DNA of 64,000 nt from Lepidodermella squamata (lineage: Eukaryota > Animalia > Gastrotricha). Below, piece by piece: positions 6,972 to 55,000 of this stretch (positions are counted from its first letter, which is position 1; every line of letters begins with the position of its first letter). Made by a program: the position numbers and the translations under genes. The DNA is taken from contig JBLDXI010000042.1 in the NCBI GenBank assembly GCA_047495785.1, forward strand, positions 1,488,001-1,552,000, given 5' to 3'. Under the pieces are notes generated by a model that was not told the DNA's origin, searched no databases, and saw only the letters and a list, made by a program, of their open reading frames with translations.

Positions 6972-9191
6972 TCAAGGGTAAGTTTCACAGAGAAAAGCAG
7001 GCCCGCCGAATCCGCAAGAGCCGTCGTACAAATAGCCACTAGCAAAAGCAGCACATGCATTAGCGCCGGCATTGGGGTTCGAATCAGACCATGGCGGAAA
7101 ATTGGCGTAGGGCGTGCCATCAGCCCACAACCATTGTCCTGAAACATTTGACAGGCCAATCAAGTCCGTTGACCCTGAGCTAACAATCGCTAGAACCGCG
7201 TCAAGTTCCGTCTGATTCTTGATCGTTGCCATCATTCCGCCGATGCTCGCGCAAGTTGCGACAGCAGCGTCGCGACTTCCGCCGATTCGGTAGTTTACGA
7301 ACGATTTGACAGCGTTCTGGCATGCTGATTCACTGGTGTAGTTTTTCGATGGGTATTTAGTTTCACCAGCCAAGCAAGCAGTCGCTCGGCACGTAACCAC
7401 GCCTCCAGACCCGAGACACCGAGAGAACACGGCCTAAGAAAACAAAGCAGTAAAACAAGGCTAAACAATCGCTTCGAAACCCACCGAGTTCAAGTCAGAC
7501 AAACATGTTTCGTAATTGATTTGAAAGGAAGTAGAGTTGGAGTAGAGCTTCATCTGATAAGGGGAACAGGATTAGGTGTAATCGCCAAAATTTTCACGTA
7601 CCTTTGTCGAACCTGTAGGACAGGCCATTCCGACGCACAGCTTCGTTCCATTCAAATCACACTGGGCAGCAGCCTATAGAACAAAACAAAAAGGTTCAAG
7701 TTCATCGCCTGGAAGTCATTAAGCAGCAATTTCAACTCACTCCCCGAAGGCAGTTCTGTTGGTTCATGTAGGGCTTCGGAGTTGCTTCTTGTGTTTCGTT
7801 GTTGGGCGAACAGCCCGCAGAGCTGAGACGACAGCCGGCAAAAGCTCGGCCTTGTGTTCCAAAACAGCGAACATGCGGCTTCTCTGTATCAGGTACTTGA
7901 ACTGAAATAAATTTCGTGTTGGAAATTGAAGCTCTGCATTCGGAGATATGAATAGTTTCCTTACTTTTCCCATCGACGCAAGCAGCAAGATTCGAAAATG
8001 TCTGGCCACCAGCAAGCTATCAAGATTTCACAAAAAATGAATGTTCGAAATTTTGTAATTTAAAAAATTTAAAATTTAAAAATATTTTTCCTTGTTTAAA
8101 ATTTATTTTTCGAAAATGAAATTTCGCATGCAAATTTCGTTTTTTGAATACAGCGGAACCCCGATTTCCCGTCACCTGATTTTCCGCCTGACGGGAAATC
8201 GCGACATGTAAATATTTAGGAGCGACTTGGACCCGCAGAGGGCAATTACACGCAAAACTACCTAGATTTCCCGTCAGGAATTTCGTGAAACCGCAGAAGA
8301 CGGGAAATGGGGGTTCTACTGTAATCTGCTTACTGTGAAACATTTTTGCAAAAATTTAAGAAATCGTCAAAAATTTCAAAAATACAGAAACTTTTAAACA
8401 GTTTAGAAATCACAGTCGCCTTAAATATTTATCATGGATTTCTGACTAAGATTTTTAATTGTCGGAAATCAGGATATTGCCTTAATTTACCAACTCGTCA
8501 ATTTGATTTCTAACTCGGCATTGGAAAAAAGACAAATACCGTGTTATTTGGGCACTTCTGAACCGGTGGGATGCATGTGATGAGTGACCCGTTCGACAAG
8601 CAGCGAATGAAATTCTGATTCTAAAAAAAACAAGCACATACAATCAACGCATGGAAGAAAGCCAAGTTGTTACTTACCGCGAAGGTAATTCTTGCGTCAT
8701 AACAGTACTGCATGCTGGAGCGAAGCGTTGCTGTGACGTAGAACGGCTGAAACTGGACAAAGTCGTGGATTCCGTTTTGTTTAATTGATACCAATGAAAA
8801 AAGCAAACTGATATTTCCTCAGGAGCTTTGCACGGTATTAAGCCTGGTCGGCAACTCGGTGTGAGAGCTGCGAATTTGTAGCACATTCGGGCATTCTGAT
8901 GGGTCACAGAAGAAAAAACCGCTGCTTGAAAATCCTCAATTTAAATGCTTACCCCACTTCGACACAAATCAAAGGTGCTGAAGTCAGGGCCAGACTATGG
9001 AAAACATGAGTTCATATTAGATCTGAAGTATTAGTTCAAACCTGGTATTCCTTCAATAAGTCGCATGTTGCTGAGCATGTTACGAACATGTTATCGAGTA
9101 GTGATAGGCATCGTCTCCATTGGCACGAAACTCCACCGATGTTAAGAAACACGGCCAGAAGCCAAGTGTTGAAAAAACCTGATTTCATCAT
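6972..9191 (-). CDS. Secreted micro-exon Cys-rich repeat protein with C-terminal C-type lectin domain (family member A)
   Basis: ATG at 9191 gives a signal peptide (MMKSGFFNTWLLAVFLNIGGVSC). About 10 GT-AG exons: 9042-9191, 8953-8994, ~8810-8896, ~8678-8752, ~8540-8620, ~7965-8016, 7741-7901, 7602-7673, ~7484-7552, 6972-7433. The last exon has CASIGGMMATI..IGL..WLWADG..W...NPN....C..YDGSC...FLCE (CTLD). Confidence 0.8.
8151..8321. mobile_element. MITE, Tc1/pogo-like, in an intron of gene A
   Basis: Imperfect TIRs cagcggaaccccgatttcccgtc / gacgggaaatgggggttctactg, flanked by TA on both sides. Confidence 0.75.
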
Positions 9192-21572: not shown

Positions 21573-23451
21573 TTTCTTTGACGATGAATTTTAACGTCGT
21601 CAGGATTTTGGCTGTTTCACAATGGGAGGAATATGAGTCATGCGGCCGTTTATCTTCTTAGCATGTCGTGACAAGCTGGTGAGCACGTTTGTGTAACGTG
21701 GCTTTGAATCGTATCACATATATGGGTAGAATTTTTAAATTTCTTACCTCCGTTCGTTGGTTAAAAAAGACGTTTTTTGGCAGCGTGGGCTTCTTTCAAT
21801 GGCGGTTTCTGCTGTGATTAATAGTGCCATTTAGTTTGTTTGATTAGGAACTTGTCTAATGGGGCTCAATTGAACAATTGAGTACTGAATCGAGATTCGA
21901 AATATAGGGAAACATCATAGAAGTTCGATCGAGTTAATCGAGATTCAAAATCTGATGAGGCGGCAGGCAAATGCGGCAACCAGCTGAGCAGTTTCCTATG
22001 TTATACGGTTTCATAAAGCTGAAACGGCCGTTCCGCTCTCATTCTATATCGCTTTGATCCCTTCTGGTTACATATTGATGAAACTCGATCCTCGTTGCTG
22101 TAACTTGATCCCGGTCCATCCCGATTGGAAACTCGATCCGCAGCATAACCTAATTGCATAAAACTAATGCGAAAATTTAGAAGCATGAGAGTTCTAGATT
22201 GAAACGTGCCAAGTGCTGACTGGTTCATTTTTCGCCTCCTGTTCTCATTAACCAAATAACAGATCAAAATTTAGGCTGAATTATGAATGGTAAAGGGTAA
22301 ATTTCCATATTTTAATTTGCTTCAAGCCTAATAAATATGCATCACTTAACTTTCGGTTTTAGACAGCCTTACCTCCTATTTACACCACTTTCTTCATTCA
22401 TCCTCAAGAAAATTAGGGGTACCGCATCTGAAACCCTGCCTTCTAATTTGACCCCAAGGCCCAAGGTTCCGCCTAGTAAGCCTAGTAAATATCCGCTATT
22501 TTCTATTTAGGTTCTGCCTTATTATTCTGATTTTAAGGTATTAGGAACGGTGGCTATGATAGCCTTATGTCACACGGCCTCTTACACGGAATTACAGATC
22601 AGTTATTGTGGCCTATCCCTTAATTAGGCTGCTATAATTTGTTCTGGTCCCCAATCAAGTTTATAACAGGCTCACTGATCGAGACAGGCCTAGCTAGGGG
22701 TTAATCAACCCTGTCTAGGATCGGCAAAAAAACGGAGAAATCGTTGCCACCATTGTTCGCCTTTTGGAAAAAATTGAGGATGAAAATTTTGGTGTCCTAC
22801 ATTGTATGCGTTACTGTGATCCATTCATGAAATTGGTATGGGCATTTTGATGTCCTATGATATGTTGCTACGGCTTACTAGCCTGGGTTTCGGATCGAAT
22901 CGTAGTCCTATCGTAGCCATTTTGCGCGCCCTGACTTGGGTTTTACTAGTTGGAGTTTTCTTGCACAATCGTGGCTCAGTCGTGCGTCCCTTTTTCGTCA
23001 TTATTTGAGACGTGGCCAGTGATTCAGACTCTTTCCTATGTATTCAAGACTGTACGTAGGGTGCGTTCAAAAAGTCTCAGAGCTTCAGAACGCAGTTCTT
23101 TCAGAATTACTCGATAATTGCGTTTTTTAATGTTCAGAGCGGTTTTTCGCATTGTTTAGTTTCAGAGGAAAGGGACACAGGTTCTCTTGATTACGCTTTC
23201 AGGCAATTTTTTAATGCTCAGAACGTTCAGTGAGGGACAAGCATTGTTCGAAGTTTCGGACTGCTCGAGCAGTCTGAAACTTTCCCTGATTACTCACGTG
23301 CGTCATGATTAGTCACAATGGTTTGATATGAATTTTATTTTTATCAATTTTTTGACGGCAAAGCGTTTATACGTCTGCAAAGTGGGAAAATTATTCGGAA
23401 ACCTTGCGGAACACCTCGGAACAACTCTCTACGGCATATTTTGAGCCAACG

Positions 23452-23656
23452 ATCTAGCTCACAGCTATTAAGATAAAATTTTCAAGTTAGAATAAATATA
23501 TTTTTCAAGTTAATCAATGCAAACAAAATAGCACGCAAAATGCCGGCTTATGAAAGGTCATTTCTACTAGCTATTAAAAATTTATCAATTTTCAAGTTTG
23601 AATACCTAAATGAATTTTTTTAATTAATCAATGCAAAAAATAGCACATGAAATGCC
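23452..23656. repeat. Degenerate ~110-bp tandem duplication
   Basis: agctatta..ttttcaagtt.gaata..ttaatcaatgcaaa..aatagcac..aaatgccg occurs twice. Confidence 0.6.
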
Positions 23657-25011
23657 GAATGGTACCACTTCTTCCTTTCCCCTTTTTCAGGAAAGCACAT
23701 AAGGCTCAGGTCAATTTTTTATTTTTCTATTCCAAAAATTGAAAATTAAATTAAAAAATTAAATTAAAAATTTTGGGCGGCATCACACATTTTCGATTTC
23801 ACAACTGCTAATTTTCGAAGCTTTCCCAAATCATTTTGAAAAATACTTTTACTTTTATCGGGAGGGTGATAGCTGCAGCTTTCAATTTAAAACCAAGAGT
23901 CGTTTGATGAACAATTCCCAAAAACTCATTCAGATCGAGACCGATTCCAAACTTTCTCGCAGAATGTATAATTTATGCCGATAAAATCGCGGCGACACTG
24001 TGGAGGTCTAGATTCTAGATTGTCCTCTATCGTCGAAAACCGAAAAAACGGGTTGAAAATCACTCGACAATCCGATAGGTTGCTTTGATTTGCCTTTTGG
24101 AGGGAAATTATTACAAAAATTTTCCAAAAAAATCAAAATTGAAGAGAGACTGTTGGGCGCTAATTCCTAACAATTTTCCCACAATTTATTGCAATATTTA
24201 AAAAATTTCCCGAGGTGAATATGCTTTCCGCGTTAGACTGCGATACAAAGAATTAAAAGTTAAAGTTTCGTTGAAACACTATTGCGCAATGAGAGAACAA
24301 TGCCTGTAATTAAGAATGCGCATTCAGTGGCGCTGAGACTTTTTGAACACACCCGTAGGGAAAGCAATAAAATGTTGTTTACGATTTGGCTTAAGGAGGC
24401 CCTACACAACGGTTATTCGATTGCGAATCTGGAGCATTATTCAACTTTTTTTTCGGACGGTCTCATTAATTAATGGCATCATACGAATGCTGTTTGTTTC
24501 GGGTCGTAAATTTGAAAAATCACAGATTCCACTTCGTCATTTATTCATTCTACGACCTCTCATCTCTCCTTCTGTTTTACGAATAATGAGGTCATTGAGA
24601 GCACCTCAGTGCATTTATATAATATAGGCGGATTTTACGAACAACGGAGCCATTTGTTAGCTGCCACATGTTGCCACATCTATCACGTTAAAATAGACAG
24701 CCACATTTACTGTTTGTTTGCTTTATTTCTTAAGCATAAACATTTTCAATTATGTATCAATGAGAACTGCGTACAATTTTTGCTAATGAGCTCATTCGAA
24801 TATGTTATAGCCAAGAAATTACAAAAATTGCGTCAATTTTTTGTCTGCCCTGGAGTGAATGATTTTCTGCGGCGCCACTTTGAGATCGCGTGCTCTGTTT
24901 TTTGTCATCGCCATTCAAGTCTGATTTGCGTGACCAGTATTGTTTCGCGACTGAGCTTTATCTACAATGACTTCTTTTTCTTGCTTTGCCACAATGAAGC
25001 CTTGTAAAAAA

Positions 25012-31067: not shown

Positions 31068-32513
31068 ATGAAGTCTTTCGTCGCTCTAGCTCTTTTTGCC
31101 CTCGTTGCCTGTAATGTGGACGCCCTTCACCGCAGGAAGGCCGAGCCACGTCTCACCCCTCAGGGTGCGGAGAAAGCTCGCGTTAAGGACGACCCAGGCC
31201 AGACCCTCTTCCTAACGCCCTACATCAAGAGCGGCCAGCTCGCCCAGGCTAGAGCATTGTCTGTCGTTGAGCCGCTTATCCCCAACTACTCTGGAAATGC
31301 CGGATACATCACTGTCGATGATGCCACTGGATCGAACATGTTCTTCTGGATGGTGCGAACCCCGAAGAATAACGGAAGCGCCCCGCTTCTTTTGTGGCTC
31401 CAGGGTGGACCAGGCGCCTCGTCGATGTTCGGCCTTTTCGTAGAGAACGGCCCGTTCAAAGTCGACGCGAACATGAACGTCTCGCCGCGAGATATCCACT
31501 GGACAAAGGATTACAACATGATTTTCATCGACAACCCAGTCGGCACCGGGTTCTCGTTCACGCAAAGCGAAGCTGGTTACCGGGTCGACGAGGACGGCGT
31601 CGCTGATCACCTGTACAAGTTCTTCCAGCAATTCTACACGCTGTACACCGACCTTCAAAGCCAGCCTTTCTACGTATCTGGCGAGTCATATGCTGGCAAA
31701 TACGTCCCGGCTTTGGCGGCGAAGTTGGCTCAAATGGAGCAGATCAACAAGGTGTTGGGCCGAGCTTCACCCATCCCGAAATTGGCGGGAGTTTTGGTTG
31801 GAAACGGGCTGTCGGACCCGCAGACCATGCTGGCCCCTAATGCAGATCATTTGTACAGCTTGGGTCTTTTGGACGAGGAACAGCGCGAATATTTCCAACA
31901 GCAAACCGATCTAGCTGTTGATTATATGAAGAATCAAAACTACGCCGCTGCGTTCCAGATTTTCGACTATTTAATCAACGCCGATTTCTACCCGTACCCC
32001 TCGTACTTTGCCAATGCTTCGGGTTGTACCGATTACTTCAACTTCCTGCTGTGTAGACAAGCCCCGCCAGAGTTCAACTACTACGTCCCGTTTTTGCAGC
32101 TCAACTCAACTCGAAAGGCTATTCATGTAGGCAATCAGCCTTATGCTGATCAATCTTCGGTTGTTGAGAAGCATTTGATCAATGGCGATATCATGAATTC
32201 AGTCCGAGATAGGGTTGAGTACCTTTTGACCCAGACCAGCATTCCTATCCTGTACTACTCCGGTAATTTGGACCTGATTGTCCCAACAATGGGTACTGAC
32301 AACTTTTTGCGGTCGCTGAACTGGCCGTTTTCTGAGCAGTGGCTTCATGCGAATCGAACAATCTGGGCCGATTCTGATAATGAGGCGTTTGCTTACTCGA
32401 CCACTGTTCAAACGCTGTCGTTCGCCATCATCCGCAATGCTGGCCACATGGTGCCGTACGACCAGCCGGAGAGTGCTTACCTCATGGTTCGCAAATTTAT
32501 CAGCGGAATTTGA
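31068..32513 (+). CDS. CPVL-like: Serine carboxypeptidase S10 (CPVL/vitellogenic-like), intronless
   Basis: Signal peptide; LWLQGGPGASS, FIDNPVGTGFSF, GESYAGKY (Ser), GNLDLIV (Asp), NAGHMVPYDQP (His). Confidence 0.95.
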   Translation: MKSFVALALFALVACNVDALHRRKAEPRLTPQGAEKARVKDDPGQTLFLTPYIKSGQLAQARALSVVEPLIPNYSGNAGYITVDDATGSNMFFWMVRTPKNNGSAPLLLWLQGGPGASSMFGLFVENGPFKVDANMNVSPRDIHWTKDYNMIFIDNPVGTGFSFTQSEAGYRVDEDGVADHLYKFFQQFYTLYTDLQSQPFYVSGESYAGKYVPALAAKLAQMEQINKVLGRASPIPKLAGVLVGNGLSDPQTMLAPNADHLYSLGLLDEEQREYFQQQTDLAVDYMKNQNYAAAFQIFDYLINADFYPYPSYFANASGCTDYFNFLLCRQAPPEFNYYVPFLQLNSTRKAIHVGNQPYADQSSVVEKHLINGDIMNSVRDRVEYLLTQTSIPILYYSGNLDLIVPTMGTDNFLRSLNWPFSEQWLHANRTIWADSDNEAFAYSTTVQTLSFAIIRNAGHMVPYDQPESAYLMVRKFISGI

Positions 32514-32923
32514 AATGATACCGAATAGAGGAAGAACACAAGTACATTCATCGTGTTTGATTTTATTGGAAATTAATGTGCTGAAATAAATTGAATAATT
32601 TGAATGCGACTTAATTTGTACAGTGTGTAATTTTTCTTTCGACTTTCGATGTAAAAACCTCAGATAAAGTGTGTCCAAGAAATGTAGGTTGAAGTACAGT
32701 GTGTCCGTCAAATAATATGAGCCTATATATAGCCTTTTAATTGCGTCTGTTCACGAGTCGTGCATGAGGCAAAAAAAATGCAGCACTGAATGATAGTAAA
32801 GCTGTTGTTGCTTCTTGCTGGAATAATATCAATTGTTGCTTCACCAAAGTTTGTATTATTCAATCAAAATAAAGAGTATTTTTCAGAACGAAAGAATTTG
32901 CCTCAAGATATTGTAGTCAAAAA

Positions 32924-34165
32924 ATGAGCCTCCAAAAGTATAGGTATAATAAGGTCCAACGCGCAAAAATGGTGACGTTATATTTGGAAAATAATCGAAA
33001 TGCCGCAGCAGCCGCGCTGGCCCATCGAACGCAATATAAATCAAAATGCGTTGACCAAACAGTTGCTCGACAGTGGGATAAACACGATACCTTTGGTTTG
33101 TCAAGTTTTCAAACGCCATTTTTCCTTTAATGCGTGATGTATTTAGGTGATTTGAGTGATAAAAAAGCTCCCGGAAGAGCGCGCTCAGTTCGCTCCGACG
33201 CTTTTGACACGAAAGTTTTGATTTTCTTCGAAGAAAATCCGACTCAATCTTGCCGGGGTGCAGCTCGACAATTGGCATGTGGGAAAACGACAATAAACGA
33301 TATACTGCACGAGTATAATTATCACCCTTACAAAATGCAACCTGCACAGAGATTGCTGCCTGCTGATTATGCAAAACGAGTTTTATTTTGTTCCGGCATG
33401 ATAGCGAAAGGCGAGCAATTGGATGAGTTTTTGAAGAACGTTTTAGTTGGAGACGAAGCGCAGTTCAGAACAGATGGTTTTGTGAATCACCAAAACTGCA
33501 GGTAAAAATTAAAAGTAATTTTTTAAATAATTAATTAGCGGTCAATTGAGGTTTTGGTCGCGATCTAACCCTGGGTTCACACAACCGGTGAAGGATCAAG
33601 ACGCAGAACGGGTCATGGTTTGGTGCGGCATTCTGGGCGACCAGGTGATCGGGCCTTACTTTTTTGATGACACAGTGACCGGGGTAGCTTACTTGCAAAT
33701 GCTTGAATCTTACGTTTGGCCTATGATAAGCGCTCGAGCTGATGAAACTTGGTTCATGCAGGACGGGGCGCCGTCGCATTTTTCATGGCAAGTTCGGGAC
33801 TGGTTGTCCGAAAAGTTCGATGATCGCTGGATAGGGAGAGGTCAAGCAGGAACGCAGGCCTGGCCCCCTCGCTCTCCAGATTTAACTGTAAGTAAATGGC
33901 CCTTCATGATATGATTCTATTAAAATTGTTTTACTAGCCATTGGACTTCTTCCTGTGGGAATATGTTAAATTTAATGTTTACAATGGCTCGCCAATTCGA
34001 TCGCTTGGCGAGCTGAAACAGCGCATCGTTGAGGCAGTTGGAAAGATAACTCCGCAAATGCTCGGTAATGTCCGCAAAAATTGGAGGAAGCGCCTTCGCC
34101 TTTGCGTTTCTCAAGAAGGAAAACATTTTGAACACATTCCTAGGTCGCAATGGAAACTGCTGTAG
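32924..34165 (+). CDS. Tc1/mariner transposase, 4 exons, ~363 aa, DD43D spacing
   Basis: Exons 32924-33095, 33147-33501, 33551 (or in-frame 33539)-33887, 33938-34165 splice into one frame. GDEAQF, VMVWCGI..IGPYFF, FMQDGAPSH, RWIGRG..WPPRSPDLT|PLDFFLW. Confidence 0.9.
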
Positions 34166-34261
34166 TTGCTTTTATTGCATTTGTTGCATTTGTTGCATTT
34201 CATGCTTTAACAGCAATTATAAAAATTAAGACGTGCATTTTTAGGCAGTTTTCTTTAAAAA

Positions 34262-34803
34262 ATGACTCGCGGCCGCGGAAAAGCCAAGACGACGAGCAAG
34301 TCGGTAGGAAAAACGTCAAAAATTATTAGTAAAAAGCTTCCACCGATGAAACCAGCAATAGCGGATCCTGTTAAAGCAATGGAGTTGCGTAAGTTCCTAG
34401 AATGAACAATTGATTTTGAAACATTCACGATTTTGCAGTTGGTCCGGCTGGGAAATGGGGCCCGGAAGAAGAATTGCGATTGGAGCCCTTCCTGGTTAGT
34501 TCTTTACGGGCAGGCGCCTACCCTACCTCAAGACGACTGCGTATCTACTCGACAGCGTATGATACAAATTTTTTGGCAAATTTTCCTGGGCGCACTTTTG
34601 ACGAGATATGGCAGAAGGCGCAGCGGGCGTACACAAAAAAAAAGAACACTGAATTCAAAGATGAAATGGTCAAAGCGGCAATGGCCGATTTCAAGAAGTC
34701 ACAAAAAACGAAAAAGCCTGAAGATGAAGGGGGCGAAGATGATGATGACGAAGATGAAGGCGAGGAAGAGGAAGAGGAAGAAGATGAAACTGAACAAAAA
34801 TAA
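34262..34803 (+). CDS. Transposon-internal second gene: basic N-terminus, Myb/SANT-like domain, poly-acidic tail (163 aa)
   Basis: Exons 34262-34388 and 34439-34803 (50-nt GTAAGT..TTGCAG intron, phase 1). KWGPEEELRL...FPGRTFDEIWQKAQR; C-terminal EDEGGEDDDDEDEGEEEEEEEDETEQK; AATAAA at ~34873. Confidence 0.75.
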
Positions 34804-35606
34804 TGATGATAAGGATTGTTAATGTTAAATTTTGTTAAATGATGATAATAATTGAAGGCGCGGGTCGTTGCGAATAAATAGAAGCCTTTCTCATCTTTTT
34901 TTCAATATCACCTGAAATAATTGAAACGTAACAAGTTCAATCATTAGCACGAGCCAATGCAGACAAATTTTAGCAAGCAGTAGTAAATATGGCTTATGTA
35001 GTTATGGACGCATTATTTTTTACATCTAGTGAAAAAAATGGAGCGCTTGGTTTGGCACGCGCCACGCTAGGCGTTGCTTTCACACTATAAATAGCCTCAT
35101 ATTATTTGACGGACACACTGTAGTTCACCTGCCATTTCATCAATTCGGGGAACATTCGTTCCACGAGGCTACATTCGTTCGAAAGAGGACTCGTGTGAGA
35201 ACTGGCTAACTTAGAGCGCGAAGTTTGAAAGTCACTCGCACTAATAGTTTTACTGGTTTGGTAGTTGCAGTTGGCACACCCAAACAAACACAGCAAAAGT
35301 ATTTTCCATCCCTGGCAGCTCCAGGATCCAAGATCGCATCATGGCTTATTGTAAAATTGTAAAGGAGCAATGAGGAATGAAGCATGATTTTTTATTTTAC
35401 ACATGAGTTTTGAACAGCCCTTAATCAGAATTCAATTCTGAGGCCAGACCTTCAACCGGAATCCAAAAATCAAACCGCAACGCGGCGTTCTAATCTGTAT
35501 GTGCCCTCATATTTTATTGCTCTTCAACTTCGCAACATACATGTTTGTCATCAAATATGACTATAATCGTCTTCGCATTCCAGTCAATGAAGAATCAACC
35601 CGCATA

Positions 35607-38600
35607 TTAATAGCCTGTTGAAAATAAAATGAAATTTTTTGATGATACATCATTTTGATCGAGGCTTACCAGAAAAAGCAGCACAGTACAACTGGAGGAT
35701 ATTCAGCTTGTTATCAAACAGGGTATTGTTAACGATACTAAGACAGCCGATAGAGCCATTCAAATTTGAAGAAGCGCCACTGAATACAAGTTCAAAACAA
35801 AGCTTAGCGAATTATAGAACAATCAAAGCATTTTTATTGACTGAAATGCGGCTTAACGATCCATGGAGCCAAATATGCATGACGAGACGTTGAACTTGAA
35901 CGTTATTCCGCTTCTAACGAAGGCTTCACTAACTTATACAATGAAATGTCCAATATTTCCGGCCCTCATCCTGACTGTTCCACGCGACCGAGGAACGAAC
36001 TGAGATTATAACAAGGAATTCTGGGATCGGAGGAAAACGCCGTTTTGATAGAAAGATTCCTCTCGGTCATATCTTTTAAATTACACCTTGAGTTCGGAAA
36101 ACTAATGTCGCAATCGCGAGCTAATGTAAACAAAATATTTTTAAAATTCTAAAATTTTTATAATTTTAAATATTAAATTTGTTTTCAAATACAAATTTAA
36201 TTTGCAGTGAAAAACATGCAGGAAAACGCGAAATTTGAATTTCTCGTCGTTCACTTTTCTGGAGGGGGGGGGGGGGGGGGTCTGCAAATAAGCGAAAATA
36301 TACGACACACCTGTATATATCCCCGCTCACTAATACAACCCGACGAAAAAATCGTTAGTTCATAATTAACCCAGGCCTCGAAATTGTCACACAGCTACTT
36401 TAATTTTGCCGTAGCACGCGTTGAAAATAATTGAAAGCCTTAATAGTGAAGCATGATCGCAATCAATGTGGAGCTATCGCAATCAATCTTATGATGAAGA
36501 AAGTGAACCTACATTTTTTCAATTGATAAATGATTTTGTTAGTAGACCAAACTTTTTAAATTCAGAAGTTTGTTAAATTTTGAATTTTTCACAGAATCGA
36601 CAAATAAAATAATCTAAAAACGTCGTCTTAATATAAATCGCAAGCGGCTTTTTGTGATGATTCGCAATTAAACAGCACACCCGTATATATCCCCGCTCCC
36701 TAATACAACCCGAATAAAAAATTATTTGTTCATAGATATAGCCCGTGGAAAATTTTTCGGAAATACGGAAATTTCGGAAATTCGGAAATTTTTCGGAAAT
36801 ACGGTAGATGTAGAAGATCCTTTGGTGACCGTTGGTGACCGAATATTGACAAGGCTTGGATTTCTAGTTTCTGAGGCATGGTAATTAACGTTTAGACCTA
36901 ACTCTTCGGCAAATCCGCCCTAATGCCCATTTCACACCAAATGATAGTAAACTGTGAAATGTCTATTTCAACCACTAAATTATTTGTAGTCCGAGAAGGA
37001 TGAGGATTTTCGGGGAAGGACAGGAACGGGATATAAATGATTCACGAATGATAAAGCACACACATACTGTATTCGCGAAAAGCTCAAAAATGACCATTTT
37101 TTATTACGCACTAATTACGCGAGCTTGATAACCCCTTGATGGACAATCGACCACCAGTTACAGGGCAGTGATTTGATTGGCTTAGTTGTCTCAGCCAATC
37201 AGCGGCGCCTCGCAGCGGCATCCACTTTTAGCTCAAGTAAATTGTCATCCTGCTAGGAAATGAGCATGAAATGACCAACTCTTACTTCTCGCAGGTGCCT
37301 GGTGCCCAAGGCCGCTTTTCAAATCAACAAAAAGATTTACAATTACGTAATCTCCACGAGCGATTTTCTTTCACGAGGGATTTTTTTCGCGTGCAATTAA
37401 TTTTTGCGAGGGATAAATTTTCGCGAATCTTGAATTCGCGAGCAGAGGTCGTCGCGAAATTTCGCGAAAACAAAATGACCGCGAAAATGTGTACGTATAC
37501 AGTAAATATTTTTACCTGCCAAGTCGGAAAGATGATGTAGATGTGTTGGGAGACACACCATTGAGGAATGCCCCGCTTGCGTCGCAAAAGATTTTCATTT
37601 GATATGGAGGAGCGCTTTGGAGATAGTAGAAATGCGGTGATCCATCTGGTTGTCGGCAAGTTGTTGAAAACGAAGGACCATTCGGACCGATCGAGCAAGT
37701 GAATGTTGTCTCGTTGCTCATGAAGAGGCTCAGCCCGGTAGTTGTAAGCCCAGGGTCAGAAAACTCAAGTAAAGGAGCCGGGAAACTGAGAGGCTTCGCG
37801 TAAAAGCTGATCGTGAAAGACCCTCCGCCGATATCCAACTTGCTGGCCGTCATTCGAATCTGGTTTCCGCTGTTAAGATTGACGCCTTTATCAGCGACGC
37901 CGAACACGCTTTCCCCAGGTAAGAACGGCGACTGGCTGGTGACTGAAGCTGCAGGAGCGATGATGTCGTCAAAGTTTGTTGCAAGAGGGAAGTACGCGAT
38001 ATGTCCAGAGATTGCGTTGCCTACGTCGCTTGGAACAATCGGCTTTCCAGCGTGTAGTTGGTAACATAGTCTCCGTATCGAACGAATACGTTTAGCCGAG
38101 ATGGCCGCTTTATGGAAAGACAAGCACGAAAAATAGGTGTCAACACCTACTGGGCGGTCCTTGAGGACCTTGAGTGACGTGATCGTAGCTGTCGGTGCTA
38201 CTACAGCAGACGGACTGCTAATGATTTCGTCGCAGAACACGTATTGTGAGCCGGTTGATTTTTCGTACGTCACGCCAATGTGGCGCATTAATCCATATAG
38301 ACACTGAACTGTAGTTTGAGTACCTGAGAATAAATCAAAAGATAAGCTATTTTTTCCGCGAAAGCATAGCTCAACTTGCCATCAGCTCTCTTAACAACGA
38401 CTTTAGAGTTTGAACTATCAAATGCGAGAGTAAGTTGGGTGTTTCCAGCTTCATCAAGCATCGCAACTATGGGGATGAAGTTATACGAAGATAGGAAAGC
38501 TACGAAAGCCGCAATAGTGAAGTCTGTTGATAAGCCAAAGGCTGTGGTGGGGATATCGAGACTTGCACCTGCAGGCGAGTAGATTCCCGTCTTTCCCGGT

Positions 38601-41600
38601 AAGTCATATGGGCCACTAGTCCAGTAAACGTCTCCGATAGCATTAGCGGTAATCGAATCGGGGCCATTGTCGTTCAGATTACCATTCAGCGGCCAGATTC
38701 CAGCAGGAAGAGGAAGCCCCGGAACGGCAACTGTTGATTTCAATGTTATATTAAAAAAGTAGGAGTACGTAAGTATACGTATGTAATAACCATGACAATT
38801 TTGTTTATTATGACTGACAATTAGTTGACTTTTGTGGCAATTTTCATTGAATTTTTCATTATTTTCCATTATTTTGTCAACATTTTAGGTTATGCATATG
38901 CTGCTCAAGCAAGCACTTCAAAATCAAAAAGCATCGGCAAGCAAATTTAGGTAAGAATCGCTCTGATTCCCCACCATTTTCTGAGTAATGATTGCTTCTG
39001 CTGGAAAAAGTAGGGATAGCCAGTCCTTTATTTTCCAGAAAATCAGATTTTCTGCTGAACATTTGCCACTGAATTTAATTTTTGGTTAATATAATAATAA
39101 AGGATTATTCTATCGCTAAAATAAATTGCACAGTCTTAATCCTGTAAATCGTAGCCAAAACGTAAAGTGTCACCTGTGCGCGCACTATGTAAACAAACCC
39201 TGCGAATTGTAACCACAAACGTGAAACTGTAGTCAGGTGCGTTAAAATGGGACCCTAATTCAATAATTCGCGCGATAGCCCTATTTCGTCGAGTCCGTAC
39301 CCATTTGAATAGCCCGCTGCATTTCCAGACTACAAAACTTAGGCCACCCTTATTCTATAGCTAGCAGGTAGAGAAATGAAATTTCCCCCTTATCTGAAAC
39401 CCCGAGCGAGTTTGGCGCAGCCAAACGAGTCGAGTCAATAAGTGACTTTGATTTGATTTGATTTGATTTCTTCAGTAAATCACAGGTCTTTGTAAATCAA
39501 TCATTTCAAATCAAATCATCAGGCCAGTTTAAATCAAATCAAATCAAATCTTTCGCATAGGGAAACATGAGCATCATGGTATATTTCTGAGGATTCTTTC
39601 ATATTTTAAGCTTGGTTTTGACGGAATGAGTCTATAAAATAGCTCCAGGCTTTTGAAAACAAGTGTTTTCAAGGCAAATGTGAGTTCTCATGCTTAACAG
39701 GTGGAATTCCGATATTTCTGATAACTTCTCCAAATCAGCAGTAAATCAAGTGGGCTAAATTGAAATCAAATCAAATCATCCTGAAATTTTGTAAATTAAA
39801 TCATCAAAAAATCAAATCATCAAAAAATGGCCTAAATCAAATCAAATCAAATTAATGCCGAAAAATGATAATAAGTAGGGAAAAAATTGAAAATACAACG
39901 ATTATCGGTCATCGATGTATCGTTTTGGGAAATAATTATTTTGGGAATCATTTTTTTATTTTGAAGCGGTGGATTTTAAGAGCAATTTCTCTTGAGGTTA
40001 ACCTAATTGCCAATTGGGGCGGATTGCTCATAATGGTACGACATGTATTATTCAAAAAAATTTGAGCTCATTTCCCTTAATTCACTGAAAAATTTAGAAC
40101 TCACTCGTTTCACATTGCAGAGATGTTGGGTAAAGCTTAATCGGCTAGAGAAGAAAATTATTAAACAAGCAACACGCTATGTATACCTGGCATTAAGCTG
40201 ACTCACCTGCCACGGGGAAGCACACGGTTCATCTTTAGCCACGCATTTGTAACTCAAGCCAGAGCTGTCATAGCATAGTGTTCGCTGCGAAAAATCATAG
40301 TAACAAATGTTAGCGACAGACGACAGATCATCCCTGTAACAAACCTGAAGACTTGCCACCAGGCAGTCAGCGTAATTGTCAGCAAAACTTGCTTTCGAAG
40401 AATAAGAACTCGACTAAAAAGTGAATATTATATTATATTATTTCATACTATTTTATATATAGTAAAAGGCTCTATGGTATTTTCCTTCTCATTTGCTACC
40501 ATGAACTCAGTTTTCGGTACATTAATTTTCAGACCTAAAATTTGGCAGGCTTCAACAAAGATATGTCATCATCATCATCATCATTTGGTTTTATTTATCG
40601 TCGTTTTGCGTTGGTGAGGCATACAATAAAGTTTTAACGACGGCGAGAGCGAGAAGTCAAGTAGATTCCGTTCCCCGCGACCTGAAGGCCAAAAGTTCCC
40701 GAATGAAGGCCCTCCAGTTAGACCGATCACAAGCTGTCTCCTCAATTTTGTCCCAATTTAGACATTTTTCATTATAGACGCTTACAAAATTTTTGTAATT
40801 TTCAAGATTTTTTGCTTGCAATAAGCTTTGAGTGTTACAATAATCCCATCCTACCCTGGGCCTGCCTAACTTCCTTTGCCAGCCCTTGGGTGGGGTCCAT
40901 AAGTACGTTTGCTTGACTAGGTTATCGTCATTCATTCTAAGAGTATGTCCTAAGAAACGTAGTCGGTTATGTTCTATTTGAGCTGAGATAGGTTCTATAC
41001 CTTCACAGGTTTTTCTTATGTCAGCATTTCTGATTTTATCCATAATTGTGACGTTGGCTATAGCCCTGAGCCACCTCATCTGCACAACATCCAGCCTCGG
41101 TTGGTGAGCTGCGGTTGCATTCCAACTTTCAGAAGCGTAGAGGAGTGTCGGAGTCATTACAGCTCGCTTGACCTTCATTTTTGAAGGGATACTGACTTGC
41201 GATTTATTATTTATGAATTTGTTTAATGCCCCGAAACAAGACCCGGCCTTTTGCATCCTCTCTTCTATTTCCAGAGTGCAAGTGCCGTCAGAGCTAATTA
41301 TGCTTCCTAGATATTTAAAGGTATCTATTCTTTCCAGATTCTCCCCGTTTATTTTTAACGTGGAATCGTCAGGATTTTCGGGCGGTTTATCCGTTTCTTC
41401 GTTTTTAACCACCATATACTTGGTTTTGGCGACGTTAATTTTCAGTCCCAACTCTGTACAATTTTCCTCAAAAATTTGTAATAAATTAGCTATCTCTTTT
41501 TTGCTAGTTCCTATTAGCGTTCCGTCGTCAGCGAATGCTAGACTATTTAACCGTTCTTTTCCTAGAGGAAAACCGCCATTTGCTATTGCTACTTGTTCGC

Positions 41601-43637
41601 ATATAAGGTTGAAAGTTATAATGAATAAAAGCGGGGATAGTGGGCAGCCTTGTCTGAGCCCCCGTCTTACGTAGAAAAAGGGTGATATTTGGTTTTCGAT
41701 TTTTACTGCTACCTTATTGCTATGGTAGAAACTTTTTACTGCTTCTATCAGATCAGTCGGGATTTCGAATTTTTTCAGTGCGTCCCAGACTTTATCTCTA
41801 TTTACGAGATCGTACGCTTTTTCCAGGTCTAAGAACACCAGGTGTAGCTCTCGATTATACTCAAGGGTTTTTTCTATAATTTGCCTAAGAATAAAAATAC
41901 AGTCTCGTGTCCCTTTGCCTTTTTGGAAGCCAAATTGACGAAGTGACAATTTTCCTACCAAAAGGTCGCGTAATTTTCGCTCAAGAATTACAGCGTATAA
42001 TTTACCTACAACGCTTAGTAGACTAATGCCGCGGTACAGCAAAGATATGTATTAAGTGCTATTACGGTATTTGGTCTTTGGTCTTGGTTTAAAGACCTGG
42101 TTGCGGTCTTGTCGGTCTGGGTCTTGGTCTTGCTAAGACCGGAAAAAAATTGACAGACCGATAATCTGCGATCAATCAAGCAGGATTAAGGTTAAACTAG
42201 TTGTTGAACAAAGTAGCTTAGACCTGAATATCCTACACTCATCGCACCTATTACAGCCTCGTGAATTTGAAAAAAATTTCCCATGATATCCCACGAATAT
42301 TGCAATTGCTCTGGCAGAGAACCAGCCCATTTTATCAGTTATACTCATCTTTAATGCATTTGCTTTTTCAAGCGCAAAAACAGTATCAAGACGCGAACGC
42401 CTCGTAGATTAACTTACAAGCGTGAAGCTCGGTGACGGGCAATTGTTTCGGCAAACAAGACCAGTCGATGAAGAGCAAAGCGCTGCCGGCTGATCAGAAA
42501 AAGCAGAGTAAAAAAAATGTTTCGCATTTTGTTGAAAACTAACCCCTCTAGTGCAATGATCTTTGTCGATATAGGAACCAGCGCTGAACGTCTGAAATAA
42601 CAAAAAGCTCTGAGAGGAACGAAAAATGACGTAATAGTATTACATTAGTCTGGTAGGTTGAATTACAAGCTGTTGATTGGCAGCCATAGAATGACCGATC
42701 ACTCGTAGAAAAGCAGCGGTACTGAGTCTTGAAGTTGTCAGCATTTCGAACAACTACAGAAATAAAAGCGGCTTGAAACGTGGATTAAACAGCATGATTA
42801 CGCACCGTTCAGCTCCGAGTAGCATTTCTCAATGGTGGCAATAGTTCGAATAAAAGTCTGTTAAAAAATCCACAATACAAAGGTTACGAAACAAATTTCA
42901 ATCTAGGCCAAGAAATTGGCAAAGCATCAAGTCGTTCAATTTCCCGACCAGGCGGGATTAATGATGAGACGACGCGAACATTTTATTTCTCAATTAATAT
43001 TAACTCACATGATTGGGCGGGCAGGCGGCGTTGTATGCAACACATACACGTTGGCCGCTTTTTTCGCACAGGTTGGCCGGGCGGGTCTGCGTGGAGTCGA
43101 AATTCAACAATTTAGAATGACAATAAAAAGCTAAAACAAACTAGGAATTTTTTAATATCGCTGCGGCATTCGTCGTATTTTGTTGAGAAGGTGTTGCCGA
43201 TGAACTCGTTTACCTGGGCAGCATGATTGAGCAAAGTCGAATAATTTATTTGAAAAACTCACTAGGACTTCATCCGAGGAACAGCCAGCGTTTCTAGGAA
43301 TGCATCGCATGCTTAACTGCTTGTAGTTGTAACAGCTTCGAGCCGACTGAAAAATGGGAATAAATCTCAGGGATTAAAGAGAAAAATAAAAAATTACCCC
43401 AGCTATGCATGACGCATAACTAGTTAGAGCAGTTCCGATCTGAAGAATCAATCATAAATCGAAAATACGATAACAGAATTTTCAAATAATTACCCAAACT
43501 TCATCGAGGTATGAGCAATCGCTTTTACAGCCAGCGAATGAATCATTAAGGCGAGAGAAGCATCGTTTAAATGATCCTTGAGCTCCGCACAGATTGACCA
43601 GTGAAAAGAACAGTAAAAGGCCAAGCAGAGTTGACAT
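35607..43637 (-). CDS. Secreted micro-exon Cys-rich repeat protein with two LamG/ConA-like domains (family member B)
   Basis: ATG 43637 MSTLLGLLLFFSLVNLCGAQGSFKRCFSRLNDSFAGCKSDC. About 12 short exons to ~40105, then exons ~38380-38730 (GIWPLNGNLND), 37516-38323 (IAYFPL..SFTISFYAKP), ~35670-35779 and 35607-35614. Confidence 0.8.
36303..36745. repeat. Two ~70-bp direct repeats next to a poly-G run and a (ttcggaaa)n tract
   Basis: cacacc(t/c)gtatatatccccgctc(a/c)ctaatacaacccga at ~36306 and ~36676; poly-G ~36263-36280; cggaaat repeats at 36757-36803. Confidence 0.6.
37067..37502. mobile_element. Probable TA-flanked MITE in an intron of gene B
   Basis: ta-ctgtat...atacag-ta ends and repeated (t/c)cgcgaaa subterminal motifs; the TIR is short, so support is weak. 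Confidence 0.45.
39446..39852. repeat. (AAATC)n-rich repeat in both orientations
   Basis: gatttgatttgattt at ~39450 and several aaatcaaatc arrays up to ~39850. Confidence 0.7.
40567..42039 (-). mobile_element. 5'-truncated RTE-like LINE with open RT frame, in an intron of gene B
   Basis: YRGISLLSVVGK, QFGFQKGKGT, FLDLEKAYD, GLRQGCPLSPLLF, LAFADD; (TGA)n 3' tail; 11-bp TSD caaagatatgt at 40556-40566 and 42040-42050. Confidence 0.92.
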
Positions 43638-44250: not shown

Positions 44251-44926
44251 CCATTTAATAATTGGAAGGCCCTGAAACAGGTACGCTCAGCAAAGAGACG
44301 AGGGATAATGATAGAAAAAGACCCAAGTCGACGAGTGGAATTAGGATCAAAATCACCGTCCGCGGCAAAATATTCGTTCGATAGTAGATGAGAATGCACG
44401 CATTCCGGTTGATCGCTATCGCTAAATGAGCCTCAAATCCACCCGCCCGTTGAGGCACCCGCATGTAATTCGGAGGCTCAGGCGGCGGTATTTCAAGCTC
44501 CATTGCCGGGCCATTACGAATTACGAACTTACTGAAATCGATGCTCGTGACCGAAGATCTGATGGGCAAGCGCTCCATAACATAAGTCACCAGGAGAATT
44601 ACATGCATTAATATTTAATGGTAGAAATCACCAGCATCAATCGGTTTTAAATAGATAAATAAATAAATTATGATTGATGAAAAAAGTATTCATTAATTGT
44701 TGATCTGTTCCATTTGTGCCAATTTCACAGCTAATAATTACTCACCGATAAGCTCCAACAGATAAGTACACAGTGTTACTTGCTAATTTTGTATTATATG
44801 ATATATGATTGCTCAGACCGAACTGGCAGTTCCTAAACCCAATAATGCCAAACAGATAACTTGATTCCTAACAGTTGTTCAAATTACGACCAGCTGTTAG
44901 AATTTGCGGATTTAATTTCCTAATGC

Positions 44927-45580
44927 TTTTGGACGAGGAACAGCGCGAATATTTCCAACAGCAAACCGATAACCGATCTAGCTGTGGATTACATGAAAAA
45001 TCAAAACAACGCCGCTGCGTTACAGATTTTCGACTATTTGATCAACGCCGATTTCTACCCGTACCCGTCGTACTTCGCCAATGCCTCGGGCTGTACGGAT
45101 TACTTCAACTTCTTGCTGTGTAGACAAGCCCCGCCAGAATTCAACTACTACGTCCCGTTTTTGCAGCTCAACTCAACTCGAAAGGCTATTCATGTAGGCA
45201 ATCAACCCTATGCGGATCAATCCTCGGTTGTCGAGAAGCATTTGATCAGTGGCGATATCATGAATTCAGTCCGAGATCGGGTTGAGTACCTTTTGACCCA
45301 GACCAGCATTCCTATCCTGTACTACTCCGGTAATTTGGACCTGATTGTCCCAACAATGGGTACTGACAACTTTTTGCGGTCGTTGAACTGGCCGTTTTCT
45401 GAGAATTGGCTTCATGCGAATCGAACAATCTGGGCTGATGCTGATAACGAGGCGTTTGCTTACTCGACCACTGTTCAAACGCTGTCCTTCGCCATCATCC
45501 GCAATGCTGGCCACATGGTGCCGTACGACCAGCCGGAGAGTGCTTACCTCATGGTTCGCAAATTTATCAGCGGAATTTAA
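44927..45580 (+). pseudogene. 5'-truncated duplicate of the S10 carboxypeptidase
   Basis: Near-identical to ~31867-32513. It lacks the signal peptide and the catalytic Ser motif, and has a short ccgataaccgat duplication. 3'UTR similarity runs to ~45690. Confidence 0.88.
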
Positions 45581-46211
45581 ATATTACTGATTAGAAGGAC
45601 ATTTTTCGTGTTTGATTTAATTGGAAATTAATGTGCTGGAATAAATTGTATAATTTGAATGCGGCTTTAATCTTAAAGTGTGTAATTTCTTTCGATGAAA
45701 ACAATGTCAAATATTTTGTAATTGTAATACAAAAGTCAGTTAAGGACCTCAAGGTGGCCGATCACCCGGCAAAAACTGAGAGCGTAGTCATTTGTCTGAA
45801 ATTTGAAAAACCTATCTATACCCTGTAGCTCTGACCCATTTTCGCACCCATATTCCACCTGGTATGGTATATTCGATTTAACACTAAGCAACACTAATCG
45901 ATAGAACGCGTTGATTTTAGGTATTTAGAAAATTAGGATTTTAGTTACAAACTGTGGAAATGTTAGTTTTGGTCGCTGGCGAATTTCGAGATGCGGTCTC
46001 CAGCTTATCGACCAACACGAAGTTTTATCTCACAATCGGTCTATATATCAGAACGCTGATTCAGAGCTAATTTATTTCCTTTTTGTTATTGCAAAATTGT
46101 CAATTGAATAAGTTAATTCAGATGTTCAAGTTGTGCTAATTCCATCATAGAGATTAACTTGGCATGAAAATGGAATATGGAATCAACCTGACTTCGGTAT
46201 CTAGAAATGAG

Positions 46212-50210: not shown

Positions 50211-51470
50211 CTATTCACAGTCAAACTTGAACTCGTTCGAAATCAAATGCCTGTTTGAAAGCAAAATCAGCTCATTCGATGATATAGTTATGTTTGCGAT
50301 CGGGACTTGCCAGAATAGGCAGCACAGCTGACATCGAGAATCGAGAATTCTCAGCTTGCCATCGTCTAACAAACCACTAAGAACACTTAGACATGCGATA
50401 GAACCATTCAAGTTGGCAGAAGCGACACTGAATAAAAGTACACAGACGAATAAAATTCATGGCTGCCAGCTAACAACAACTTAGATTTACCCTCCTAGTC
50501 GGAATGATGCCGTAGATGTAGCAAGAGGCGACAACATTGTGGAGTTGATCTTGCCATCGCAAGCGAGCCCCATTTCTCCAGATGCTGTCAACCACAGCGT
50601 GTAAATATGGGGATAACTATCTTGTTGTAAGCAGGTTGTTGTAAGCGTGGGGCCATTTGGACTGTTCGAGAAAGTTAATGTGGTCGCGTCGTTCTGAATG
50701 AGGCTCATCCCGACAGTTGTTAGCGCTGCGTCTGAAAACTCGAGAAGCGGAGCCGGATAGCTTAGCGGCTTGGCGTAAAGGCTAAGCACGAATGCCTGGG
50801 AGCCGAAATTTAGTTTGCTAGCAGTCATTCGAATCTGGTTACCACCGTTTAGATTGAGACCTTTATTAGCGATCCCGAACACGCTTTCCCCGGCTTCGAA
50901 CGCAGACTGGCTGGTGACTGAGGCCGCAGGAGCGATCATGTCGTTGAAGTTTGAAAAGTTAAAGGAACCGATTTATTCAACAATTTTGATCATATGGATA
51001 CTCAATGACACAAATTAGAACTTACTTGCTTCGCATAGTAAAGAAGTTGCGAAGAGTTTAACAGACTATAAAATGATGAAAAAATTCATTTCTTGAATCA
51101 GGAGGCTAAGTGACTAGCCTGCCATGGTGAAGCACACGCTTCAGCTTTAGCCACGCATTTTTAACTCAAATCAGAGCTAGCGTAGCAAAGTTTCCTCTAG
51201 AAAAGTCGATATCGCATGAGATCATTTTGCGACGTAATTATGTACCTGCTGAATCGCCACTAGACAGTCAGCGTAATTGTCAGCAAACAATGCTTTCGCC
51301 GAATAATTGCCCGACTAATTAATCATGTCTCGATCAAAATGAGTTCTCAATGAATCAAAAATAAAACCTGAGTCGTTCCAGTGGGACAGGTGCCGTAGCC
51401 TTGTGAGGAATAGTGTTATGGAGACCACACTCATGGAGAAAGCTGTTAACGCAAAATGGAAAATCAATAA
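50211..51470 (-). pseudogene. Partial decayed duplicate of micro-exon/LamG gene C (member D)
   Basis: Matches parts of 52046-55340. TAC->TAA stop at ~51162, first LamG domain missing, and a 7-bp tctcgat duplication at ~50335 frameshifts the penultimate exon. Confidence 0.8.
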
Positions 51471-52045: not shown

Positions 52046-55000
52046 TCAATATCCTGTTTCAAAAAAATTAACTCATGTATAGACTGGTGCAATTTTTCGA
52101 GGCTTACCAGAATAGGCAGCACAGCTGACATCGAGAATATTCAGCTTGCCTTCATCTAATAAACCAGTTACCACACTCAGGCATGCGATAGAACCATTCA
52201 GGTTGGCAGAAGCGGCACTGAATAAAAGTACACAGAGAACGCACATTTTAGAAACGTATAGAATTTATAGCCGCCGGAATCTCTAAATTTGAATTCCGGA
52301 ATTAGAATCAAAACTCGGTGTTCTAACATATATTAGAACCTTTATATATATATAGATTTTATTGTTATAAACAACAAAAGCTCGGCCGGGCCAGACAACA
52401 AAATGAGAATTTATCCCACTGTTTTGTTAATTTTGGAAGGTTCTGGGGCGCGTTTCAGTGGAAAATCTTCACAATTTTCTCGCTTCGCTCGGTTATTAGC
52501 CGATTTTTGGCAGAAACAGCAAAAAGATCTGCTCGCGGATCGAAGATCGCACCCTGAGAAGACGCAAAAAATAACAACCATCATTCACGTGAACAAGTTC
52601 AAGCTAAAAATAGAGCGGCAAAATGCAATTGTGCTGCGGCAGAATGCAAATGGAAAAGGTGTATTTCACCGTCATTTCCAAAGACCTGCTCAAACCATGT
52701 GAGCCCCAGTTTGGTGTCGACAGAACCGCTGGGCCATGGCTGATTTTGCCGCCAGACATTTTGCCCTACGACGCATCGTTGACCCGAAAACAAAGAATTT
52801 TGACAGACCAGGATTTAGATCCAAATATCGGATCTCGCAGTCTACATATTTTTGGCAGTTAAAGTGTTTAAGCTTACAATATTTTTAAAACTTCGAATCA
52901 AATCATCAAGCATCTTCGTGAAAGCAGAATAACCTGGAAATTCTAAAGATTTTCATACTTGACCGAAAATAAGTGAAAAGTGGGGTTTGGCGTTTTTTTT
53001 GTATTTTCAAGCAAATGGCAAAAGGTGTGTTGACTTGAAAAGGAACGATTCTTGGATTCCTAGATGTTGTCTTGAGGATTTCGAATTTTCAAATTTCAGA
53101 CCTCTACGATCTACGAGGCTCCCATTAGCCTTAAAATACGGAAAACCCCAGAGCAACCCTGAAAAGTGTTATTGATTCAGGTTGTCGTCGAGACACTATC
53201 GTGATTCCACCAAAAATTTTGAAAATATAGCGAGATTCCTCATCTCAGATTACCCTTAGAAACGTCAACTATGCATAAGAAAATAATATCAGAATTTATT
53301 GCGTGGGGGAATTTTAAATGATGCAATAAAACACAAAATTGTTAAGCCCGCATTTTTTGAAATTTGCATTTTTTCGCTCGGATACTTTGAAGCCTATTTT
53401 CTCACCAACCCTGATGGATATCAACCCCTTTTTATACTGTTCGACTCCTCATTAATCGATCTTGAGAGTGGCATCAAAATCTCACTATGTCAGAAATTTC
53501 GCCAAACGCCAAACCCTACTTTTCACTTATTTTTGGTCATTTCACATTAAATTTCATAGTTCAAAGGACTTGGAAACTATCATCTTTTACCTTCCAAGTC
53601 GGAATGATGCCGTAGACGTAGCAAGAGGTGGAAAACTTGAATAGTAGACATTACCATCGCAAGCGAGTCCCAATTCCCCGGAAGGTTTCAACGAGAGCGT
53701 GTAAAAATGCGGATAATCTTCTTGTTCAAAGCACGGCGCTGTGAGCGTGGGGCCATTTGGACTGTTCGAGAAAGTAAGCGTGCTGGCGTCGTTCTGAACC
53801 AGGCTCATTCCAACAGTTGTAAGCGCTGGGTTTGAAAACTCGAAAAGCGGAGCCGGGAAGCTAAGCGGCTTCGCGTAAAAGCTTAGAACGAATGACTGTG
53901 AGCCGAAATTGAACTTGCTAGCAGTCATTCGAATCTGGTTTCCGCTGTTTAGATTAAGGCCTTTATTAGCGACCCCGAACACGCTTTCCCCGACTTGGAA
54001 CGGCGACTGGCTAATGACTGCGGCTTGAGGAGCGATGATATCGTCAAAGTTTGTTGCCAGAGGAAAATGAGCAACGAGTCCGTTGACTGCGGTCGCGATA
54101 TTCTCCTGATCAATTGGATGCCCGGCGTGAACTTGATAGCACTTTCTCCGCAGCTTGCGCAAATTTTCACGTGGGATGACGGCTTTGTGCACAGATAAGC
54201 AGGACAAAAGAATGTTTGAGGACGCTGAGTTTTTGCCGAGCTGGAGAGACGTGATCGGAGCTGTGGGTGCTGTTTTATTCAGGCCATCAGCTAGACTGCT
54301 GGCGATATCACCGCAGAACAAGTATTGCGTACGAGTTGATTCTTCGTAGGTCAAGACAACGTGACGCCAACCCCAGTCTGAGAAACAGTTAACGCTAGCT
54401 CGAGTACCTACAGGACGGAATAATTAGAATGTAATTAAATTAATTAGATCTTCAACTTGCCGTCAATTCGGATAATAGTAACCGTTTTGTCATCGCTATT
54501 GTAAGTGAGAGTAAGTTGGAGGCTTTCGCTCGAGTCGTACATCTCAACTACAGGGATTTCATCTGATCCACCGTAATCAACTCGGAAAAAAATTGAAACG
54601 GTGTAACCTGTCGATAAGGTACCAACAGCGGAGGTGGGGATCTTGAGATAACCGGCGGTATTTAAGAACAATATCGCCGATTGGAAAAAGCCATATGGCC
54701 CAACGCCTAACCAAGAGCTTGCTCCAATGACTTGGGCGGAGACTGGATTCGGCCCGATGTCATTCAGGTTGCGGTACAGCGGCCAGTATCCAGCTTCGAG
54801 GGGAAGGCCCTGAACGGCATCTGTTTATTTTATCGAGAGAAATTATTAATTGACTGTTACAATAAGAAAAGAAGCGTAATATTTGATGTATGGACTGGAC
54901 TCGAGGCTATTTGGATAGACTTAATGAGAAAAAATGAAACTAACTTGCTTCGCATAGTGAAGAAGTGGCGAAGAGTTTAAGCGGCTTGAAAATGATAAAA

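Follow-up and report, generated by a model that had tools for sequence, protein, structure and literature searches.

The window analysed here, a 64-kb (64,000 nucleotides) stretch of a compact animal genome with a GC content of about 42%, contains a complete Tc1/mariner element of 2424 bp (32697-35120). The element is bounded by a perfect pair of 25-bp terminal inverted repeats (TIRs), the left one (32697..32721, + strand) starting with CAGTGTGTCC and the right one at 35096..35120 on the - strand. They are flanked by TA target-site duplications at 32695..32696 and 35121..35122 (counting the TA, the repeats reach 27 bp), and no further copy of the TIR was found in the 64-kb window. The element begins ~180 bp past an intronless serine carboxypeptidase gene, and its 5' subterminal region (32722..32923, + strand) contains a TATA-like box (position 32724), followed by a T-rich AG whose last letter is 32886. 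The ends could be fixed by means of X1, a DNA run that is probably the source sample and hence not independent of the window. One of its contigs (depth 44.8) joins 32693 directly to 35120, and the 2426 letters skipped correspond to the 2424 bp of the element plus one TA. This is the pre-insertion allele with a single TA, present at a depth equal to that of the filled allele, which X1 holds as a 2330-bp contig identical to 32784-35113 with zero differences (depth 39.7). The empty allele shows that the ends of the element, perfect TIRs and TA flanks as given in the preliminary description, are exact and that the insertion is on one haplotype, i.e., heterozygous. The element is intact and recently inserted. 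The bases outside the two TAs (32679-32694 and 35123-35138) form an imperfect palindrome with 11 matches out of 16, a level reached by 4 of the 3777 TA sites in the window (the element's own two being excluded by the design of the test), and this may reflect a target preference or an older hairpin.

The surroundings contain several other repeats. The carboxypeptidase (Peptidase_S10, 31068-32513) has a partial paralogue 13 kb off (44926-45695, 92% identical), which was considered as a possible empty site and rejected because it ends ahead of the insertion site, leaving the window without one. Part of the region from 35.6 to 44 kb recurs at 50-58.6 kb, and at least three tandem paralogous ORFs with 70-83% identity and no Pfam match are located on the - strand (37512-38869, 50487-50939 and 53587-54354). 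Two pairs of inverted repeats, of 36 bp (508 bp apart, 52960-53539) and 35 bp (1226 bp apart, 23059-24354), look like other non-autonomous DNA transposons, and two reverse-transcriptase ORFs on the - strand (40657-42042 and 61068-61961) are probably LINE remnants.

The first gene of the element codes for the transposase. It can be modelled as four exons on the + strand, separated by predicted GT-AG introns of 51, 49, and 50 bp, giving a product of 363 amino acids with no internal stop. Exon 1 (32924..33095) contains a DUF4817 helix-turn-helix (HTH; Pfam PF16087, E 1e-4, 22.2 bits vs. a cut-off of 22.6), exon 2 (33147..33501) a second HTH (HTH_Tnp_Tc3_2, E 0.006) and the first catalytic Asp, D160, exon 3 (33551..33887) D247 and the motif WPPRSPDL, and exon 4 (33938..34165) D291 and the stop. 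The Asp triad (160, 247, 291) has therefore a DD43D spacing. Searches and folds were done exon by exon, and the joined products of this gene and of the second one described below (363 and 163 amino acids) were translated for length and motif spacing only. Pfam gave DUF4817, HTH_Tnp_Tc3_2, and DDE_3 for the separate exons, each under its curated cut-off, and no other family. The protein has its own DNA-binding HTHs, and also a basic KRLR motif.

All the matches found with exon 3 were transposases of the rosa/Visitor type (DD41D-type), with 35-55% identity. The spacing in these relatives is mostly DD41D with a range of 38-46, and the 43 residues found here are, judging from the sequences, a variant within the rosa/Visitor DD41D group. 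In a 61-row tree (114 columns, rooted at the midpoint and with no maT, Tc1, or mariner outgroup) the window row fell inside a set of 28 rows with support 100/99, the nearest being L005 and L006, weakly supported. By its motifs and matches the transposase is of the rosa/Visitor type (DUF4817, DD43D) and not of the Harbinger type. The assignment to Tc1/mariner made at the outset is borne out by the TA, the TIRs, the HTHs with the DDD core, and the rosa/Visitor-type matches.

The second gene (ORF2) is on the same strand and starts 96 bp past the transposase stop (~97 bp in the preliminary description, which had also outlined its two exons). The AT-rich spacer between them (34166..34261, +) contains TATAAA at 34218 and a T-rich, acceptor-like AG ending at 34244. 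ORF2 is intact and codes for 163 amino acids. Its exon 1 (34262..34388, +; 42 codons and one base) encodes a basic K/R-rich N-terminus with a net charge of +9, and its exon 2 (34439..34803, +) a helical, probably Myb/SANT-like domain (~34456-34640), followed by a long helix and by an acidic tail in which 21 of the last 27 residues are D/E; the K/R-rich and D/E-rich ends noted initially are thus both real. The intron between them (34389..34438, +) is 50 bp long and reads GTAAGT...TTGCAG. An AATAAA at 34873..34878 (+), the sole one from 34100 to the right end, is likely the poly(A) signal of ORF2. The exons have a GC content of 0.46-0.47, vs. 0.27-0.36 in their surroundings.

Splicing of ORF2 had been proposed as something to look for, and the exact joint 34388>34439 (GT..AG) was found in X4, a 2015 run from a third study, at depth 4 in a single contig with a short side of 21 letters; it was not in X1-X3. 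That X4 is RNA is a guess, probable only, to which a poly-T loose end at the neighboring carboxypeptidase and many strand-switch joints lend cDNA-like signs. The X4 contigs match ORF2 at 99%+ and cover it end to end, and they cover the transposase only over ~33430-33580. ORF2 is a spliced and expressed second gene. A chance open frame, or an artefact of assembly, could be suspected, since shuffling the 3' region 500 times gave stop-free stretches of the length of exon 2 in 31 cases and since the genome from which the window probably comes was obtained by amplification from a single animal (PMC11660948). However, the exact spliced joint, a homologue at E 2e-9, the exon-like GC, and copies in independent samples (the latter and the homologue are described below) have largely refuted this explanation, which we take to be extremely improbable.

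ORF2 may be expressed like the downstream gene of an operon. Its mRNA would probably be cut from a same-strand transcript at the 34244 acceptor by spliced-leader trans-splicing. Upstream of this acceptor only poor donors could be recognized, a reading made by inspection, since the introns of the window were too few to train a weight matrix for splice sites, the output of which was noise. No spliced leader was seen on the ORF2 RNA of X4, the contigs of which stop short of the 5' end. Alternatively, the mRNA could start from a promoter in the spacer, with the TATAAA at 34218. A fusion of transposase and ORF2 through the acceptors at 34244/34248 was rejected, as it would be out of frame or meet an in-frame TAA; for 34244 the obstacle is an in-frame TAA located just ahead of the ORF2 ATG. 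Intron 1 of the transposase and the ORF2 intron are both in phase 1, and a splice from the HTH exon (32924-33095) to ORF2 exon 2 (34439-34803) would keep the frame; it was not seen in any read.

We have compared the element with 84 rosa-type control loci. About 40 of them show candidate inverted ends, most of them spanning 1.2-1.8 kb, and in most of these the distance from the transposase stop to the right end is <500 bp, vs. 930 bp in the window element. The nearest one-gene relatives, L005 and L006, are intact, with a single ORF in a layout of 1.35 kb, indicating that the family has no general need of a helper. Two other controls, L077 (4034-8693) and L075 (4276-7428), have candidate inverted ends with which the part beyond the transposase stop would measure 1.8-2.9 kb, and no significant ORF2 match was found in them. 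In fact, none of the 84 loci has an ORF2 homologue (best E 0.3). The starting premise that Tc1/mariner elements normally carry a transposase only has exceptions in the wider group, namely the ciliate TBE and Tec elements (PMC7325037). Since the controls lack ORF2 and published rosa elements measure ~1.3 kb (with TIRs of 27-32 bp; PMC5490172), the second gene was most simply gained in the sublineage of the window element.

Relatives of ORF2 are extremely scarce. A full HMMER search with exon 2 against 1.84 billion representative proteins gave one true homologue, P0012, a protein of 88 amino acids from another sample with 43% identity to ORF2 exon 2 (E 1.9e-9). Its alignment score was 150, vs. 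a maximum of 57 in the shuffles. The first Trp, AGAYPTS, FPG, and KAQR.Y.K are conserved between the two, and P0012 has a short acidic end only. Searching again with a profile recovered P0012 alone, a word-index search with exon 2 gave no match, and neither did scans of metagenome and viral contigs for ORF2. Two more candidates, P0013 (a tandem-repeat ORF) and P0014 (a bacterial sigma-70 region-4 repeat protein), were discarded as spurious. The contig of P0012 (1473 bp, run ERR11523675) has, on the same strand, a gene of 165 amino acids that ends 396 bp ahead of the P0012 Trp; the equivalent distance in the window is 291 bp. This neighbor has no Pfam record, and its size is like that of the C-terminal half of a rosa transposase (166 amino acids from the Met of MVW to the stop in the window element, with a control median of 160). 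Therefore, by size and spacing only, both genes fit a candidate transposase plus ORF2 element in another sample. The depth of the conservation between ORF2 and P0012 implies selection on the protein.

Other copies of the family could be found in the reads. X2 and X3, runs from another study, contain low-depth pieces of transposase and ORF2, many of them 95-99% identical; ORF2 is there ~97% identical, ungapped, located beside transposase pieces, and with its intron unspliced. X1 contains a 1313-bp relative in which a transposase piece ending at 33194 is linked to 34428 by a stretch of 36 letters similar to 33781-33816, and in which ORF2 is broken by a stop and indels. It is thus an older member of the family, with ORF2 in the same place and decayed together with the transposase. 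The suspicion that ORF2 might be present in one copy only is refuted by this older relative, and the copies in X2 and X3 and the 43% identical protein in another sample point the same way. The family has also produced many short non-autonomous derivatives, as indicated by the end regions in X1, with a summed depth of 3450-7238 (depth being not a copy number), and by a 1068-bp contig in X4 (record 29). The latter keeps 32694-32898, 34124-34200, and 34906-34989 at ~85-89% identity, with ~300 unlike letters per gap and most of the transposase and ORF2 unmatched. The 5' subterminal region (32722..32923) is common to the high-copy non-autonomous derivatives, with depths of 1300-7200 vs. 40 in X1. 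The high X1 depth suggests tens of copies of the ~1.07-kb derivative.

These copies bear on the origin of ORF2. It could be host cargo captured by the element, in which case its conservation would come from a host gene family and P0012 would be a host orthologue. Such a role agrees with the decay of ORF2 into a pseudogene in the related X1 copy and with its absence from the abundant ~1-kb derivative, the neighbor of P0012 is only a candidate transposase, and the GC content and intron size of ORF2 fit host and transposase equally. However, apart from the element itself and the 1313-bp relative there is no match to ORF2 at at least 80% identity in X1, so that a near-identical form of the single-copy host gene contemplated in the preliminary description is absent there. 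To have just one homologue in 1.8 billion representative proteins is not typical of conserved host Myb genes. In three samples ORF2 retains its frame, intron, and expression, and the geometry around P0012 matches that of the element. We consider the capture of mere cargo rather improbable.

As to the fold, ORF2 is probably a divergent member of the Myb/SANT/trihelix type, as far as models can tell. Searches of ORF2 against Pfam and against PDB sequences gave no match. In ESM feature searches Myb_Rap1 came out on top (scores of 0.85 and 0.84), and its family or clan accounted for all of the ten best named matches. Scores below 0.9 count as leads only, and ten out of ten was also the result for a third of the shuffled proteins. 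Two single-sequence models were obtained. The first, of low confidence (90 amino acids, pLDDT 56), had Sap1 as its best match in an exhaustive VIA search (Z 6.8, rmsd 3.7, 82 aligned residues), followed by RepB (5.7), Reb1 (5.4), Zeste (5.0), and NgTRF (4.9), with Cdc5, GT-1, CoREST, and c-Myb also present. About half of the 50 rows were Myb/SANT chains, judged from their titles and with middling Z values, and the best Atlas match was a Myb_DNA-bind_4/MADF cluster (TM 0.52). The second model (70 amino acids, pLDDT 63) has three helices at positions matching those of the first in another packing, that of the first alone being like Myb; it gave no Myb matches, and VIA retrieved unrelated helical proteins. 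Foldseek gave no match at E <= 0.001 for either model. The Myb/SANT assignment made from the sequence thus stands on the ESM leads and on one of the two models, and Pfam, the PDB sequences, and Foldseek do not reproduce it. Of the three Trp residues of Myb domains ORF2 has one, the first, which is conserved. The Trp after FPGRT, initially read as a Myb Trp, was mistaken: this Trp (of EIW) is off-register, five residues past GRT rather than eight, and is a Leu in P0012. The true third position is an Ala in both ORF2 and P0012, as happens in SHAQKY-type Myb domains.

Taking everything together, we are inclined, with some reserve, to see here an autonomous rosa/Visitor-type (DD43D) cut-and-paste element belonging to a sublineage that gained a second gene and has long kept it as a helper in the style of Harbinger. 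As in the rest of the family, the two HTHs of the transposase would bind the TIRs, and the element would be excised and inserted at a TA. The product of ORF2, with its basic N-terminus, its divergent Myb/SANT-like domain of three helices, and its acidic tail, would be a nuclear protein acting in trans, most likely by binding element DNA near the ends. By contacting histones or the transposase, the acidic tail might open up the element or its target and so raise transposition. If ORF2 does act in trans, short derivatives could drop it. We hold as more tentative the fuller proposal of an undescribed rosa-type lineage with an independent Harbinger-like two-component design, in which the Myb/SANT-like partner would be needed or would strongly boost transposition and both genes would form a small operon with trans-splicing.

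The same conservation and expression would also fit ORF2 as a long-resident protector or regulator outside the transposition complex, i.e., an anti-silencing or transactivating factor, or a negative regulator limiting transposase output. The transposase, with its HTHs and KRLR motif, may need no help in TIR binding or nuclear import, and the X4 RNA spans the whole of ORF2 with almost none from the transposase (a matter of presence only). Furthermore, Myb proteins that plants have derived from Harbinger counteract silencing (PMC5339849). Against this role, the two ends have in common no repeated subterminal motif of more than 9-10 bp, and we regard it as unlikely, if well worth considering.

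Comparison with known systems helps to place the element. Like the rosa/Visitor DD41D elements (Crmar2, Apismar4; PMC5490172, PMC7325037), among whose type it appears in the tree, it has a TA duplication, short TIRs, DUF4817 with a Tc3-type HTH, a DDD triad with WPPRSPDL..LDFFLW, and MITE-like derivatives. It differs from them in its DD43D spacing, its three ~50-bp introns, and its length of 2.4 instead of ~1.3 kb, with a second gene in the 930 bp that separate the transposase stop from the right TIR. The LTIR/Lsra DD40-41D elements of aphids (PMC5490172) have a rosa-related transposase and a similar length (~2.3-2.4 kb), but there the extra length is due to TIRs of ~460 bp, while in the window element, with TIRs of 25 bp, it is due to the gene. 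The combination of a transposase with a second ORF coding for a small protein is shared with PIF/Harbinger and with NuwaI/II and Pangu (PHIS; PMC4482050, PMC5339849, PMC3158080), where this protein is of the Myb/SANT/trihelix type, a probable fold in our case. However, the transposases are unrelated (theirs is an IS5/Harbinger-type DDE enzyme), their duplication is a 3-bp TWA rather than a 2-bp TA, and their partner has three conserved Trp residues where ORF2 has one. The Harbinger partner binds DNA and mediates nuclear import of the transposase (PMC5339849, PMC3158080, PMC4482050), and their transposase relies on it, whereas the one in the window has its own HTHs. Extra ORFs beside an IS630-Tc1-mariner transposase are also known in the ciliate TBE and Tec elements, which belong to other clades (PMC7325037); TBE adds a zinc-finger protein together with one of unknown function, and Tec a recombinase (PMC7325037). 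We found no Tc1/mariner element with a Myb-like partner in the literature searched, Repbase and Dfam being outside that search. The L31 "Duos" combine an IS630-Tc1-mariner transposase of another clade with an ORF2 of the SGNH (hydrolase) type.

Tools such as Sleeping Beauty and Mos1 derive from Tc1/mariner elements, which serve as the standard case of transposons with one protein. A member that is intact, moved recently, and has a conserved and expressed partner gene offers a direct test of the roles of Myb/SANT helpers, as the transposase, which has sisters in one-gene elements, lends itself to assays in which ORF2 is either supplied or left out; the two proteins of Harbinger are less easily separated. 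Should ORF2 turn out to be only cargo, the element would be a well-supported case of gene capture. If the helper interpretation is true, the design of a transposase with a Myb partner would have arisen again in an unrelated superfamily.
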